Shown: positions 20,330-37,812 of the stretch, piece after piece
How positions within the stretch are numbered: position 1 is the first letter of the stretch
Layout of the letters: the number at the start of each line of letters is the position of its first letter
Source: Ramazzottius varieornatus
Taxonomy: Eukaryota > Animalia > Tardigrada
Length of the DNA: 64,000 bases
Direction of reading: 5' to 3'
Assembly: GCA_001949185.1 (NCBI GenBank)
Contig: BDGG01000015.1
Span: 749,036-813,035 of the forward strand
The notes under the pieces: generated by a model
Database searches by the model: none
Seen by the model: the letters and a program-made list of their open reading frames with translations, nothing else
What the model was told of the DNA's origin: nothing
Translations under genes and position numbers: made by a program

Positions 20330-21583
20330 TGGCGGGATGGACCAGCGTTCTTTATCGACGACGTCCAGATCCGATGGCAGTTGGGGCAGCTCGCAGTCTC
20401 TCGGCTCGACCAGAACGCGCATCAGTAAGCTCCCTCTCGCAGACAATATTGTCCCCATCGGATAAACGGGTCTTACTTTGCAGTTGCTCCAATGAGGGAC
20501 AGGAAAGGCGAGCCGATTGGGAATCAACAGGTAAGAACGTCAACAGAAAACTTTGTGCGCTGCTTGATCGAGGTGATGACAGCAGTGATGGCAGCGTGAA
20601 CTCTTTCGCAGGTTTTTCGGCCTTCTGTCTTTCTGGATGGATCTTTTCGCTCAACCTGCGCGACAACGGACCGAAAGCTGTCTCCTTTCGACGATATGGA
20701 AAGCACCGCAGAAAGTACCACGTCGTCCGAAAGAAAGTTGGAACGAGACATCGAGCAGAGAGAAGAGCGTGCCAAGCCACGCGTCACGAAGAGCGGTAAG
20801 TTCACCCGTACACAACTTACTACACGAGCCCGCACCGAAATTCATGCGTGTGGCTTCGGTTGTTTCAGTTCTGTACGAAAGCAGAGAGCCGCAGAACTAC
20901 TTCAGCCCGAAGAGAAGCGATCCAGTGAAGCTGTATCACCAGTACGAGGCATACTGGAAAGCCCATGGGATTCCCGGAGACGATCCAAGAAAAGAACTGC
21001 GGTGGAACATTCGAAGCATGCTCATGACCAAAGACTACGAAACACCCGTGGTAAGCACATACTGTGAACTCGTTTTCTGAACTTCGCGAGACGGGAGCCC
21101 AGCAAACAAAAGTCGAACAGATCGTCCTTCAAACGGCGCACGCTTTCAGCTTATAACACTGACAACGTGCGCCATATGGGAAGATAATCTTGCTCGACAA
21201 GATTGCTTTCTCAAGTGGCGCCCGCGTCCAGCCGTTAGCCCTGAAAACATGTGTCACTTGGGGACACAGTTCTGGTGAGCTTGTTTGCCGAACTCAAAAT
21301 GTCTCCTGACTTTTTGGCTGTCGTTTCTGCGTCAACGACTTCATGTGTTTTCCAGCCGGCCAAGGGATTCGCTTATCCTGCTGAATACAAGGACGGCAAA
21401 CGAATTCCACGACCGCGACGATGGTCTTCGCAAGACACACTGGACGATTTTACCTCTGATTTTTCATCTGCCACCAGTAGCAAGAGTGGTAGCACAATAC
21501 AAAGCAACTGGACCCCGCCACCACCTTCAAGCTTCCGTCGGCCAGAAAGAAATATTTACAAGCTCATGTTCGGTAAACCCTGA
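20330..21583 (+). CDS. HYLS1: HYLS1-like centriolar protein (5' end uncertain)
   Basis: KRSDPVKLYHQYEAYWKAHGIPGDDPRKELRWNIRSML matches the HYLS1 C-terminal box; splice sites at about 20796/20868 and 21051/21355. Confidence 0.75.
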
Positions 21584-31647: not shown

Positions 31648-32387
31648 ATGGGCCTGGTCTTCTCGCGTGGAGTCGGACAGCCTCGCTTCAACCCAGGATA
31701 TCTCAAGGGTCTCGGTGGAGTATTAAAAGTGCTGGAAGTTGTCTTCGCCCTCATTGCATTCATCCTTGCCTTCAGCGGATACTTCAACTATGGCTACTTC
31801 TTCAATTCGGCGGGATGGGTCAAGTTCGCCACCGGTGTGGCATGGATCAGCAGCTTCCTCTGGTTGATCATGTACATGTGCAACATGTACCCCTGGCTGC
31901 TGTACGAAGCCATCTTTGATTTCATCCTGGCCGCCATGTTGCTCATTGCCGGAGCTGTCATGATCCGAGGTACCATCCAGCAATCCCAGCCCCAACGAGA
32001 TGGGCCAATCTGCTATTGCATAGCGGAGCATTGTACAAACACATTACAGTAAAACTTGAAAGGAGTGTTCTCGATCGTATTACTGAACAAAACTTGTTGG
32101 AGAAAATACAGTCTTTCCAACAGAGATAACTCATCGAAATCGAAGCCGTAGAATCCGTCAGGAGAAATAATTAGAATGATGAATCTCCCACAAACTTTGC
32201 ACTGATCGTAGGAGCCGACTTTGATTCGACGCGAGGAGCTTGTGTATTTTTCTGCTGGGCCGCCATGATTGTCTACATCATCGACGGCATCTACAATTTA
32301 CGGTTGAGAAGAAGTGGAGTGACCAACGCGAGTATCGGTAGCGGCAATGTTGTGACCACGACGCAGACCACCGTTATCAAGACATAA
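31648..32387 (+). CDS. MARVEL-domain tetraspan protein (plasmolipin/CMTM-like), 2 coding exons
   Basis: FNPGYLKGLGGVLKVLEVVFALIAFIL...; four hydrophobic helices; last exon GACVFFCWAAMIVYIIDG; intron at about 31970-32211. Confidence 0.85.
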
Positions 32388-32575
32388 GCATCAGCCTTTA
32401 TTTCATCTGACAATTTTTATTGGTGCCAAATGACGAATGCTCTAGTACTGTACAAGTCATGAAAAGAAAGTGCATTTTCTACTGTATTCAAAATGTCATG
32501 GTTGTGCTAGTAAACTGTAACTTTTTTGAGTTCATCAAAAAACAGAGTGGCAAGAGTAAAAAGACGACAACAGAT

Positions 32576-35459
32576 TCACATTTCCATTTGGTCGGAAAAG
32601 CCGTAAACTTCCATGACGGATGTTTCAAATTCGCCGCGTTCGCACAGCGGCGCATTATCGAAGGTTAGGCAAGGACTGGAGAAGCCGCGAGCCAGACTAC
32701 CCTCGAAGCCGATGGCCATACCGCCACCTCCGCCGCCGATCGACAGGTTGTGACTGTCGGCGGCCAAGAATAGGCTCGACTCGGCCGTCGTCCGCCGTCC
32801 GCACAGACCGACCCACGGATACAGCCGCAGCTTCGGGTCAAAGACAAACAAGAAAGTTTCACCCGTTCCGAAGAAAAGATACTCGCGTTTCTGAAAAGTA
32901 TCACGTACAATCGTCAGTAAAGCTTTTCGCACATTCGGAAGCTTACCAAACGAACTTGGAAAGATTATTTTCCCATGTGGCGCATGTTTTCAGTGTTACC
33001 GGCGGGAAGCTTGCGCCACTTGGAAAGCGACCATTCTTGTCAAGTTTGCTTGTTGTCCCAAGTGAGGCACGCTTTGGTTATCAGTGGCTGAAGGCGTGGC
33101 CCGCTAGAGAAAGGAATCTCGCCACGTTTGTGGCCGAGGTTTCCATTCTTAGCAAACGATTTCCGTGTGAACTTACTCCGAGAGTCCGTTCGCCCCAGCT
33201 GCTGCCGCAGAAGGCCCCAAAGATTTCTCCCTTCATGGTTTTCACCACCATGATTGTGGAAGAATAGCCACTGACTGTGGCTAGAAAGTTACTAATGCTC
33301 GTTCCGTTCTCATCGGTTGAGAAAATCAGGAAGGGTTGGTATATACGGTTGCGGAACGGGAGGAAAAGCCACAGCTCTTGGAACTGGAAAAGCATACCAG
33401 TCAGAAAAATTAATACTGGAGAAAAACGGAATGAAACCTAGCTTGTGATACTGGTGCGACTACATGAATATACTGGTGTACCTGGGGATATGCAAGGATA
33501 GTTCCGACAGGATTCAACAAAAACGCCGTGGAACTCTTGTTCTTTTTCAGGGCTGGTTCTGCTGGTACGGTTAGGCTGGTCTTTGGTGTCCGACGGAAGA
33601 GTCCGGCTGCGGACAGGGACCGCGAGGACTTTAGAGGCCTCAGCTCGTAATCGGCCGTTCTCGGGGTGACGATCCTCGGCGCTTTGGACTGGCTCTTCAC
33701 CAGCCTGTCCGTCAGACTGCCAATGTACAGGAAAAAGTTGATGGCGTAGTTGAGCAAGCAGATCATGCTGACGACAGGCCACCACAGAGCGATGAAGTCC
33801 TCCGAAAGACTTATGGCGCAACTCGGATAACTATCCAAAAAAACAAAAGAAAGATGAAATGAACATAACGAATAAGGACGGGAGCTCGGTAAGGTCGTTT
33901 GTCCCAAGTGGCGCCCGCACTTAGCCGGTAACACTAACAACTTGCGCCACTTGAAATTGACAAACTCGACAAATTATATTCACCAGGTGGCGCACGGTTT
34001 CAGTCAAGAACACTGGATGAGAACATGCGCTACTCGGTTCAAACGATCTGGACGGGTTTGTCTGCCGAGCTCTCACATATAAAATCGGGTAAAACCCATA
34101 AAAGAACTATGAATGGAAAATGGAACTTGGGAATAGAGGAAGAGAGTTTCTGTAGTTCTCGTACCTGGCGAAGCGAATGGTGAAAGTGAAGAGTAAGTCG
34201 GGTAACTGTGTTACGAAATAGAGAATACACGACCGATGGAGCATGGTCCATGTCGGCACAACACCCTGCGAAGCATCTCGTTCGCCAGCTAAACGGACAA
34301 TAGACAACGCCACAAAGACCAGCAAGAGTACTGTGAAGGTGATGGCTTGGACAATGAGTTCGTAGTGAAAGAGCCCGCTGGACTGGTGGACGCGCGTGTA
34401 TTTGTGGAACCAGTCGACCAGCAGCACCACCCGACAGCTCGTACTCTCGCCATTAGTCACCTCTTGCATTTGCACCAGTGCACGTTGGTAAAAAACAACA
34501 TGGGGAATCGACACAACGACTGCGACAATGGACAGAACAATACAGACAATCACCGCTTGTTTCGCTTTTGTCTTCGCGGGAGAAATGCGCCATTTTGTCG
34601 GGAGAAGCAGTCTTTCAACGATGGACGCTATTAAAATCCTGCAGAAAGACAAACAAAGAGATAAGTAAAACAAGGTCGAGTGAAGTTGAATTTACGTCAA
34701 TTCGGTTGCTCGAAGACCTTATCGTACCAGCTGGACATCAAGATAATCGTCTGCTGAACCCAGACTAGTATTCCAAGAGTGCGTTCCATGGCGTCCATGT
34801 ACTGCATGTTCAGTTGGACCTTCGGAAAGTACGTTCCGGCGTATCCCGGGATGTGAAGCCATCTGGAAAGAACGAAGGAGCAGATCAGAACAAGCCAGCC
34901 ACTCTTATCGCGAGTTTTGCTCAACTCGCGCATCGAGTCAGTTATTGAACAGCCGCAAGTGCGCGACTTCGAACAGTAACAGACTCCGCGATGACCTCAC
35001 AGCACATTTGGTACGCCGTATGGTTCTACCAGCCCGTTTTGGTCGCCATGGGGACCACTAGACAGTTTGACGGGATGGTCGACCATAGTCCCATTCAATA
35101 CTGATTGTTTGCTTTGGTCAGACTTACAGAACAAAGACATTGGCCAGGCATAAGCTGGTCAAGTAGACAATCAGTGATTTCCTCCGGATTTCCCTCATGA
35201 AGGTATGAATGTAGAAAAAGTTCCCGACGGTGCCTAGGATTAGGAGGATGGGAAAGACGGCTTGGGCAATTTGAGTCGTCGAATGGATGCCTGCATGCTC
35301 CAGCTGAGTTCCGTTTGCATAGTCCAGTTGCCTGCCGCAAGTGTCCACTTGATTGGTCGATGCATTGACTAGCCACAGTCCTGCAACACGGCGAGTAACG
35401 GGATCAGCTGATAGCGGACACGATGACGATGGCGTCCCTTTCTCCTCTCCTCCGTCCAT
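32576..35459 (-). CDS. Class A 7TM receptor fused to a C-terminal TLDc domain, 6 exons, ~603 aa
   Basis: Exons 35459-35128, 34862-34728, 34638-34165, 33830-33482, 33383-33177, 32890-32576 (1812 nt; all GT-AG; phases 2,2,2,0,0 consistent). 7TM motifs LGTVGN, YLTSLCLAN, SSWILIASIVER, SIPH, FVTQLP, NYAINFFLY; TLDc motifs LWLFLP..LIFSTDENGTSI..EIFGAF..FFGTGETFLF..LSIGGG..SPCLTFDN..EVYGF. Confidence 0.8.
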
Positions 35460-36603: not shown

Positions 36604-37812
36604 TCATCGGGAGCTCGAGTCCCTCCGAAGTTGGTTCAATACTGCTTCGGCGTCGGCGAAAACCTCGGTATACCTTGGCTGCCTGTCGGACTCTGAGGTA
36701 CGTGAGGTTCTCTTTAGCCTGGTTGCCACGCGTTGAGGTGGACGCTGCTCTTGCTGTATAGATTGTCGCTGGCAAAGCTGCTGTTCCTGGTGTGTTTGTG
36801 ATTGTTGCTGTTGCGGTTGTTGAAATTGCTGGTGGCCCCGCTGTTGGGAAACTTGTGGTGGTGGCGGTGGTGGTGGTGGCGGCTGCTCTGTGGCTGTCTC
36901 CACGTACAATTGCTGTTTTTTCAAGAGTGTCGACGTGGCCGAAGACACCGACGATCGTCGTCTGGAAACTTCAACGGGAAGGACCATTTCTTTCGGTACT
37001 TCCGGTTCAACCTCGAACATCTGGCTGACACCTTGATGAGGTCCCATGATCTCTTCTACAATAGCATTTGCGATTACGTGAGTGTTGGCAGATTCGGTCG
37101 AGTTCCTCTTGGATGGCTGCTGACGAAGAGCCTTCGGTCCAGCGGACGATACAGCAGAGTTCACTTCCGCAGGTGGTTGAATAGTGGACTGTGTCTTCTC
37201 AATCGGTACGAGTACCGAGATCTTTGAAGCAACTTTACCGGTAAACGGACAATTAAAATCGGCTTTGACAGGTGTCGAAGGAGCACAAGGGCATTTTAAC
37301 GGAGGTACAGGCTTGACAGAACAGTCTCTGGGAACGAAAGGGGGCATCGGCTCAGGAACCCATTTGGGCGGACCTTGCTTGATGAGGCTGGCAAAGTCGA
37401 CAATGGTCTTCCTTCGGGCGAAAATCATGTCTTTCAACTGTACCATGTCTTCAGCCACTTTATCGAGTATACCATCGATATTGTGTATGCGAGGTGGGAT
37501 AGCTTCTAGCCGGGTTCGTAGCTGTTCGATCTCGGGATCAGGGACCAACTTGCAGGCAGGGACGGGGTCTTCCAGGCACGGACACTCCCAGTCCGCTTTG
37601 AGTACTGGTTTTTGACAAGGAGAAAGGTGACGGGTACTTTCTGGTCTCGGAAGGGAGCTGCTGTTCGGCTTGGGACCATTTCGACAGGAGTGGTTGTCCC
37701 GTCCTTTTTCGGGAAGGCTTTCTTGCCCGGTGTAAAATGCGTGGGCGGCCATGGCTGTTTTGTTGTGCGGATCATGGAAACTGAACCTTTGGACATCTCG
37801 TCCTGTACGCAT
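36604..37812 (-). CDS. Hypothetical Pro/Gln-rich protein (~400 aa), no recognised family
   Basis: 1.2-kb uninterrupted ORF with a helical segment (IEQLRTRLEAI..ILDKVAEDMVQLKDMI), polyP and polyQ; true start uncertain. Confidence 0.65.
   Translation of the reverse strand: MRTGRDVQRFSFHDPHNKTAMAAHAFYTGQESLPEKGRDNHSCRNGPKPNSSSLPRPESTRHLSPCQKPVLKADWECPCLEDPVPACKLVPDPEIEQLRTRLEAIPPRIHNIDGILDKVAEDMVQLKDMIFARRKTIVDFASLIKQGPPKWVPEPMPPFVPRDCSVKPVPPLKCPCAPSTPVKADFNCPFTGKVASKISVLVPIEKTQSTIQPPAEVNSAVSSAGPKALRQQPSKRNSTESANTHVIANAIVEEIMGPHQGVSQMFEVEPEVPKEMVLPVEVSRRRSSVSSATSTLLKKQQLYVETATEQPPPPPPPPPQVSQQRGHQQFQQPQQQQSQTHQEQQLCQRQSIQQEQRPPQRVATRLKRTSRTSESDRQPRYTEVFADAEAVLNQLRRDSSSR

Follow-up and report, generated by a model that had tools for sequence, protein, structure and literature searches.

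The gene described here lies on the minus strand (35459-32576) of a 64,000-nucleotide (nt) window from the tardigrade Ramazzottius varieornatus (contig BDGG01000015.1; C15:749036-813035), the window being the whole stretch of DNA that was analysed. It is probably a lineage-restricted chimeric tardigrade gene encoding one membrane protein of 603 amino acids (aa), in which a Srw-like seven-transmembrane (7TM) receptor is followed by a TLDc domain of the TBC1D24 type. Translation as one protein, with the TLDc domain in the cytosol, is the outcome that we favour. The reading frame was built by a DNA duplication, in which the 3' end of TBC1D24 was added where the coding region of a receptor gene ends. 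To our knowledge, no animal G-protein-coupled receptor (GPCR) with a TLDc domain is known. A literature search on TLDc combined with GPCR, tardigrade or transmembrane architectures returned nothing relevant and no description of a receptor-TLDc protein.

The six exons were joined into 1812 nt, corresponding to 603 codons and a TGA stop codon with no internal stop. The five introns (265, 89, 334, 98, and 286 nt) each start with GT and end with AG. Exons 2-6 are entered in phases 2, 2, 2, 0, and 0, all of them phase-matched. An earlier note on this DNA had proposed six exons with canonical, phase-matched splice sites and an open reading frame (ORF) of about 603 aa, and the frame and phase check bore this out. 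The joined model was used only for frame, hydropathy, and motif spacing. All of the similarity and profile searches were carried out with single exons, and paralogues were searched in the 55.8-Mb assembly of 200 contigs. The coding signal was assessed with a codon-usage score whose training set was 17 single-exon receptor genes from this genome. Exons 1-3, 5, and 6, together with the parts of exon 4 that encode the seventh transmembrane helix (TM7) and the linker, had positive scores in the model frame only, the other two frames being negative; the remaining 24 nt at the tail of exon 4 are too short for the score to tell. Introns 1, 3, and 5 were negative in every frame. The 70-codon linker scored +0.19 per codon in frame, and its GC content at third codon positions was 0.70.

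The two halves of the protein meet inside exon 4. TM7 (LNYAINFFLY) and the first TLDc residues (GTILAYPQ) are both encoded by this exon with no stop between them, so that, as had been claimed before, the join does not need an arbitrary splice. No in-frame methionine is present between TM7 and the TLDc domain. The sequence was compared with L014, a receptor-only paralogue on C1, which has its own stop codon after a Ser/Thr/Arg-rich tail of ~60 aa. Residues 9-91 of exon 4, comprising TM7 and the linker, align to TM7 and the C-tail of L014 with 29% identity (pairwise expectation value, E, of 1e-6), and the alignment reaches to 2 residues short of the L014 stop codon. Exon 4 then ends with ~10 TLDc-like residues. 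Because the linker resembles the L014 tail and the exon end resembles TLDc, the break point is placed ~10-25 codons before the donor. It appears to coincide roughly with the former receptor stop, and the linker is evidently the old receptor C-tail. With this origin of the linker and an inherited intron, the genomic case for the join is judged to be stronger than the earlier note had it.

The C-terminal half is certainly a TLDc domain. Exon 5 matched Pfam TLD (PF07534) with 56.5 bits (4.4e-15) and exon 6 with 52.4 bits (7.6e-14), against a cut-off of 24.5. Positions 1-13 of the profile correspond to the end of exon 4, and the domain is thus covered throughout by exons 4-6. The closest solved structure for exons 5 and 6 is the TLDc domain of Drosophila Skywalker, 6R82 (1.3e-15 and 2.1e-24, respectively). 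NCOA7 matched exon 6 with 5e-13, and NCOA7 and OXR-type domains were well behind Skywalker in this solved-structure search. There are four TLDc loci in the genome. The nearest paralogue of the fusion-gene domain is a locus on C5 (47-48% identity), which carries a RabGAP-TBC exon upstream of its TLDc domain. Therefore, the C5 locus is taken as the TBC1D24/Skywalker orthologue. A locus on C3 is 32-39% identical to the fusion-gene TLDc.

The introns of these loci point to the origin of the domain. The intron just before the F..LW motif has the same codon position and phase in three TLDc loci (C5, C3, and the fusion gene). The residues before it are homologous, and with a slash at the exon end they read, together with the donors, GTSRILSEDQ/gtacgc in C5, GGQILSDDR/gtaaga in C3, and VGTILAYPQ/gtacac in the fusion gene. 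The intron 4 donor of the fusion gene is nearly identical to that of the TBC1D24 orthologue, CAG/GTACGC. The intron inside the domain lies between the same blocks as in the C5 gene, at a position that is approximate in the tblastn alignment. The end of exon 4 and intron 4 were thus inherited from a TBC1D24-type parent, and the copying was from DNA and not from mRNA. The TLDc half is a partial copy, made at the DNA level, of the TBC1D24 orthologue in the same genome. The proposal of a real, TBC1D24-like TLDc domain holds on the Pfam match, on 6R82 as best solved relative, and on the intron common with the TBC1D24 orthologue. No exon matched a TBC domain in Pfam, and the upstream exons of the C5 gene have no similarity to the fusion locus. 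Likewise, apart from the last ~10 residues, no significant similarity was found between the linker and the exon that precedes TLDc in the TBC1D24 orthologue. Mutation of G815, S817, G845, G896, L926 or E938 of NCOA7 abolishes or weakens its pull-down of the V-ATPase (PMC8608904). All six residues are identical in the fusion-gene TLDc, according to alignments with NCOA7-AS (7OBP).

The C3 locus (L010, C3:2103171-2103829) carries a third TLDc copy of the TBC1D24 type, whose introns have the same positions and which has no TBC exon upstream. The ORFs preceding it are low-complexity and Pro/Ser-rich and belong to no Pfam family. The C3 locus may represent another rewired TLDc gene.

The N-terminal half has the layout of a class A receptor. 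A hydropathy scan with a cut-off of 1.5 gave six hydrophobic stretches (TM1-TM5 and TM7); TM6, below the cut-off, was placed from its VTQLP motif, giving seven predicted helices. Two N-glycosylation sequons stand before TM1, and the tail after TM7 is basic (14 Lys or Arg in 65 residues). Therefore, the N-terminus is predicted to be outside, and the C-terminus and TLDc domain in the cytosol. The landmarks are found at class A spacing, with GN at residue 80, LCLAN at 107, ERL at 164-166, VTQLP at 302, and NFFLY at 345-349. Among the class A switch motifs, N1.50, R3.50, and P6.50 are kept; D2.50 is changed to Asn, ERY/DRY to ERL, CWxP to TQLP, and NPxxY to NFFLY, and the motifs are not found as a set. 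There is no Cys at the start of TM3, exon 2 being without cysteine, so the disulfide between Cys3.25 and the second extracellular loop is missing from the model. The earlier note had reported the Asn in place of the TM2 Asp (LCLAN) and the lack of the TM5 Pro, and both were seen in the translated model.

Similarity to named receptors is faint at the level of single exons. Exons 1, 2, and 4 did not match any Pfam family. In the Atlas feature search, the clusters nearest to exon 3 were 7tm_1, which is taken as a lead only. No receptor was matched by exon 3 in the solved-structure search and no named receptor in the representative search. AlphaFold2 gave exon 3 alone a pLDDT (predicted local distance difference test) of 54. 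A profile of ordinary receptors, made from 17 single-exon 7tm_1 genes of the same genome, barely sees the fusion-gene exons with hmmsearch. With hhalign, it gave P values of 0.015-0.04 for exons 1, 3, and 4 and 0.54 for exon 2, and GN, LAN, and NFFLY in exons 1 and 4 fell on the N1.50, D2.50, and NPxxY columns.

The receptor half could be placed through paralogues. Exons 4 and 1 gave weak matches at C1:7.059 Mb, C2:4.264 Mb, and C5:2.571 Mb. The C1 paralogue is L014, which has ERL at the end of TM3, VTQAP in TM6, and LNYSLDFLLY in TM7. Its last exon, used as a query, retrieved a family of about ten genes in its own genome. One of the last exons of this family matched Pfam Srw with 7.5e-16 and 7tm_1 with 8.6e-6, and two others were weakly Srw or 7tm_1. 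A profile of nine paralogue last exons scored 24.3 bits against exon 4 (best of 1000 shuffles, 7.1) and also aligned TM6 of exon 3 in the correct order. A profile of three paralogue TM1-TM2 exons scored 36.5 bits against exon 1 (best of 1000 shuffles, 5.5). Intron 1 is common to the paralogues: all three TM1-TM2 exons end at CT/GTAAG or CT/GTGAG in phase 2, and exon 1 of the fusion gene ends with CT/GTAAG in the same position and phase. The TM2 Asp is kept in all three paralogues whose TM2 was read, and among those only the fusion gene has Asn. The exon profile scores and the Srw-matching paralogue therefore place the 7TM half in a Srw-like branch of class A. It appears to be a very divergent member of a tardigrade-expanded, Srw-like subfamily of rhodopsin (class A) receptors, and the NFxLY motif of TM7 is apparently a hallmark of the whole paralogue family and not a private decay. 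The landmarks and the paralogue profiles agree with the earlier description of the receptor half as a divergent rhodopsin-like 7TM protein. Via the paralogues, Pfam Srw is reached as the nearest named family; a FMRFamide/sex-peptide type had been proposed before. No close paralogue of exon 3 and no exon-3-like sequence was found elsewhere in the genome.

The Srw-like family itself is found at C1:7059k, C4:732k, C5:3201k, C7:2031k, C5:2571k, C2:4264k, C12:1685k, C1:4464k, and C1:6497k. In most of these genes, NPxxY of TM7 is replaced by N(Y/F)SxNFxLY, and ERL stands for DRY in the only TM3 that was read, that of L014. Most of the members fall below the Pfam 7tm_1 cut-off. The closest match to the ectodomain and TM1 of the fusion gene lies at C15:706776-706943 (L061), 42 kb before the window. 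It is 43% identical over residues 34-93, has the VD-x-CGRQ motif in common with the fusion gene, and loses similarity after TM1. L061 may have arisen as a partial duplicate, or it may be a paralogue that has diverged strongly.

Beyond this genome, exon 3 was searched with HMMER against 1.84 billion representatives, and a single true relative, P0001, was retrieved: an ORF of 138 aa on a 578-bp metagenome contig of ENA. It is 79% identical to exon 3, its loops are conserved along with its helices, and its end is the position of the exon 3 donor. P0001 shows constraint on the receptor half in a second species and says nothing on the fusion there. An Atlas search with exon 6, skipping TBC, LysM, and GRAM, gave only TLD-only clusters and neither finds nor excludes other 7TM-TLDc proteins. 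The fusion protein may already be present, unremarked, in the annotated proteome of the species.

Several observations speak against a chimeric protein with a working TLDc domain. Word searches were blank with exons 4 and 6 and gave only P0001 with exon 3; no spliced fragment was retrieved, the length window of these searches being one that excludes a 603-aa protein. Two metagenome scans, one with exon 4 and one with the exon 3 alignment, found nothing. No fused relative was found elsewhere and therefore the fusion is seen in one genome only. Exon 3 alone scored 14.1 bits against Pfam 7tm_1 (E of 0.033), below the cut-off of 30.5, the match being collinear with the profile over positions 95-223 of 260. 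In the TLDc half, Asn replaces the EHG-motif His that all three aligned relatives have. In addition, the isolated TLDc domain of mammalian Tbc1d24 failed to pull down the V-ATPase, whereas the full-length protein co-precipitates with it (PMC8608904).

Other explanations of the locus have to be weighed. It might give separate products, namely a receptor-only protein that ends at the stop at 33410 after intron 4 retention or early polyadenylation, and possibly a TLDc-only protein of ~177 aa from the ATG at 33395, with the fusion protein minor or absent. Both of the alternative frames exist, the intron 4 donor (GTACAC) does not match the consensus strongly, the linker resembles an ordinary receptor C-tail, and no spliced fragment came from the word searches with exons 3, 4, and 6. 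However, nearly the same donor is used by the TBC1D24 orthologue (CAG/GTACGC). A TLDc-only form would miss the conserved first strand of the domain, encoded by the end of exon 4, and would need a promoter within the 98-nt intron or exon 4. Without splicing to exon 5, nothing would keep the end of exon 4 TLDc-like. Moreover, the coding signal runs through the linker and the TLDc domain is intact after ~52% divergence. Separate products are considered unlikely.

The same integrity bears on the idea of a non-functional or decaying chimera, in which the receptor or the TLDc copy would be a relic without selection, or the gene would not be expressed. The lost class A switch residues (D2.50N, ERL, and no Cys at the TM3 start) fit such decay, as do the lack of a close exon 3 paralogue and the absence of anything from the fusion gene itself in the protein collections searched with exons 3, 4, and 6. 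Yet ERL, TQxP, and NFxLY are common to intact paralogues, and the gene has 603 codons without stop or frameshift, intact splice signals (10/10), and coding-like codon usage in every exon. The TLDc domain is intact and has kept its key residues despite ~52% divergence from its parent, exon 4 still ends in the conserved first strand and donor, and a second species has a 79% identical exon 3 with conserved loops. Decay is held to be very unlikely. An assembly error that put a TLDc fragment beside a receptor gene is extremely improbable. Dispersed repeats are present in introns 3 and 5, and nothing else specific favours such an error. The junction, in contrast, lies within a repeat-free exon with continuous coding signal, and with only 48% identity to its nearest paralogue, the TLDc domain is too different to be a collapsed or misplaced duplicate of that gene.

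The preferred reading, a chimeric gene for one membrane protein, can be laid out as follows. The N-terminal 350 residues would form a divergent receptor with an extracellular N-terminus and a cytosolic C-tail, and the last 180 residues an intact TLDc domain. The 3' part of the TBC1D24/Skywalker gene, two introns included, would have been copied as DNA and would have landed at the end of the receptor coding region. The receptor stop codon would have been lost in this process, and the Ser/Thr/Arg-rich tail would have become a flexible linker of ~70 residues. TLDc domains bind the V1-B subunit and drive disassembly or assembly of the V-ATPase (PMC12139955; PMC8608904). In the fusion protein, the 7TM part might hold the TLDc domain at a membrane, where the tethered domain could bind the V1-B subunit and change pump assembly locally. 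The conformation of the receptor may gate the access of TLDc to the pump. D2.50, DRY, and NPxxY are all altered and therefore classical G-protein activation is doubtful; the 7TM part may be more an anchor or a sensor than a classical G-protein activator. That ligand sensing is coupled to the V-ATPase through the receptor is something we only infer. A G-protein-independent receptor with its own V-ATPase regulator, in which a ligand or the membrane state directly switches pump assembly at the receptor's membrane, is a distinctly unlikely extension. If it were real, such a receptor might link an external cue to organelle acidification or to protection against oxidative stress in a highly stress-tolerant animal.

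The predicted protein can be compared with known systems. According to two reports, TBC1D24 interacts with the V-ATPase (PMC8608904; PMC11699390). The fusion gene is like TBC1D24 and Drosophila Skywalker in its TLDc type, and the position, phase, and donor of the intron before the domain are as in the genome's own TBC-TLDc gene. It differs in that the fusion locus has no TBC domain or remnant and a 7TM receptor is the membrane part instead. The TLDc domain of mEAK7 and yeast Rtc5p is held at the membrane next to the V-ATPase, as is predicted for the fusion protein. These proteins have an N-myristoylation tether, an EF-hand-like fold, and a C-terminal helix entering the catalytic hexamer, whereas the fusion protein starts with MDGG (residue 2 is Asp), has a seven-helix anchor, does not match an EF-hand family in Pfam, and ends six residues past TLDc. 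With Srw-like and peptide-receptor-like class A GPCRs (Pfam clan GPCR_A), it has in common the seven hydrophobic segments and, spaced as in class A, the GN of TM1, the Arg that ends TM3, the TM6 Pro, and N....Y of TM7. Unlike them, it has Asn at D2.50, ERL, NFFLY, no Cys at the TM3 start, and a folded domain after the C-tail. GPCRs with a C-terminal effector are known from protists and plants, such as GPCR-PIPK and the 7TM-RGS proteins of the AtRGS1 type. The architecture is similar in that the C-tail of a 7TM receptor bears a cytosolic effector or regulator, but the partner domains and the lineages are different.

Table 1. Features of the fusion gene and of its introns and 3' flank, in window positions; a slash marks the exon end.
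Feature	Position	Strand	Description
Exon 1	35128..35459	-	ATG, N-terminal ectodomain of ~62 aa (sequons NAS, NGT), TM1 (GN), short basic loop, TM2 (LCLAN)
Exon 2	34728..34862	-	First outer loop and most of TM3; without cysteine
Exon 3	34165..34638	-	End of TM3 (ERL replaces DRY), TM4, long second outer loop with one Cys
Exon 3, rest	34165..34638	-	TM5 without Pro, third inner loop of 14 aa, TM6 (VTQLP)
Exon 4	33482..33830	-	Third outer loop, TM7 (LNYAINFFLY), basic Ser/Thr/Pro-rich tail of ~70 aa forming the linker
Exon 4, end	within 33482..33830	-	First TLDc strand VGTILAYPQ, donor CAG/GTAC
Exon 5	33177..33383	-	TLDc, Pfam TLD profile positions 14-76
Exon 6	32576..32890	-	TLDc, profile positions 81-169, glycine-rich bend GGGGGG, 6 more residues, TGA
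Candidate polyadenylation signals	32397..32421	-	Two AATAAA hexamers ~155-180 nt past the stop, read directly from the sequence
ATG in intron 4	33393..33395	-	In frame with exon 5, 12 nt ahead of it; possible TLDc-only start (ORF 33081-33395)
Intron-4 read-through stop	33410..33412	-	Would end a receptor-only product at ~454 aa (ORF 33410-33940)
Short dispersed repeat in intron 5	32974..33023	unassigned	CAAGTGGCGC motifs
Inverted partner of the repeat in intron 3	33904-33953		50 nt, 78% complementary to the intron 5 copy

A copy of the CAAGTGGCGC repeat also lies in the C5 TBC1D24 orthologue, within the homologous TLDc intron (L009:6713-6819), and many further copies are scattered across the window, for example near 21130, 49200, 50550, 55250, and 59200. 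The convergent neighbour gene on the plus strand has an exon (31648-32052) that encodes a MARVEL domain (Pfam, 1.1e-11). On the minus strand, an open frame of 402 aa (36604-37812) lies directly upstream of the receptor gene, and no Pfam family was matched by it.

The gene is a new pairing of two known domains, and its weight is limited to one genome and to a gene prediction made from sequence. The locus would be a clean and datable example of a chimera in which the 3' exons and introns of one gene were copied onto the stop codon of another. Its product would be a rare animal class A receptor with a folded effector domain on the C-tail. TLDc proteins are now regarded as direct regulators of V-ATPase assembly for which the cues of where and when are unclear, and a receptor-TLDc protein would offer a ready-made case of a receptor-controlled pump.

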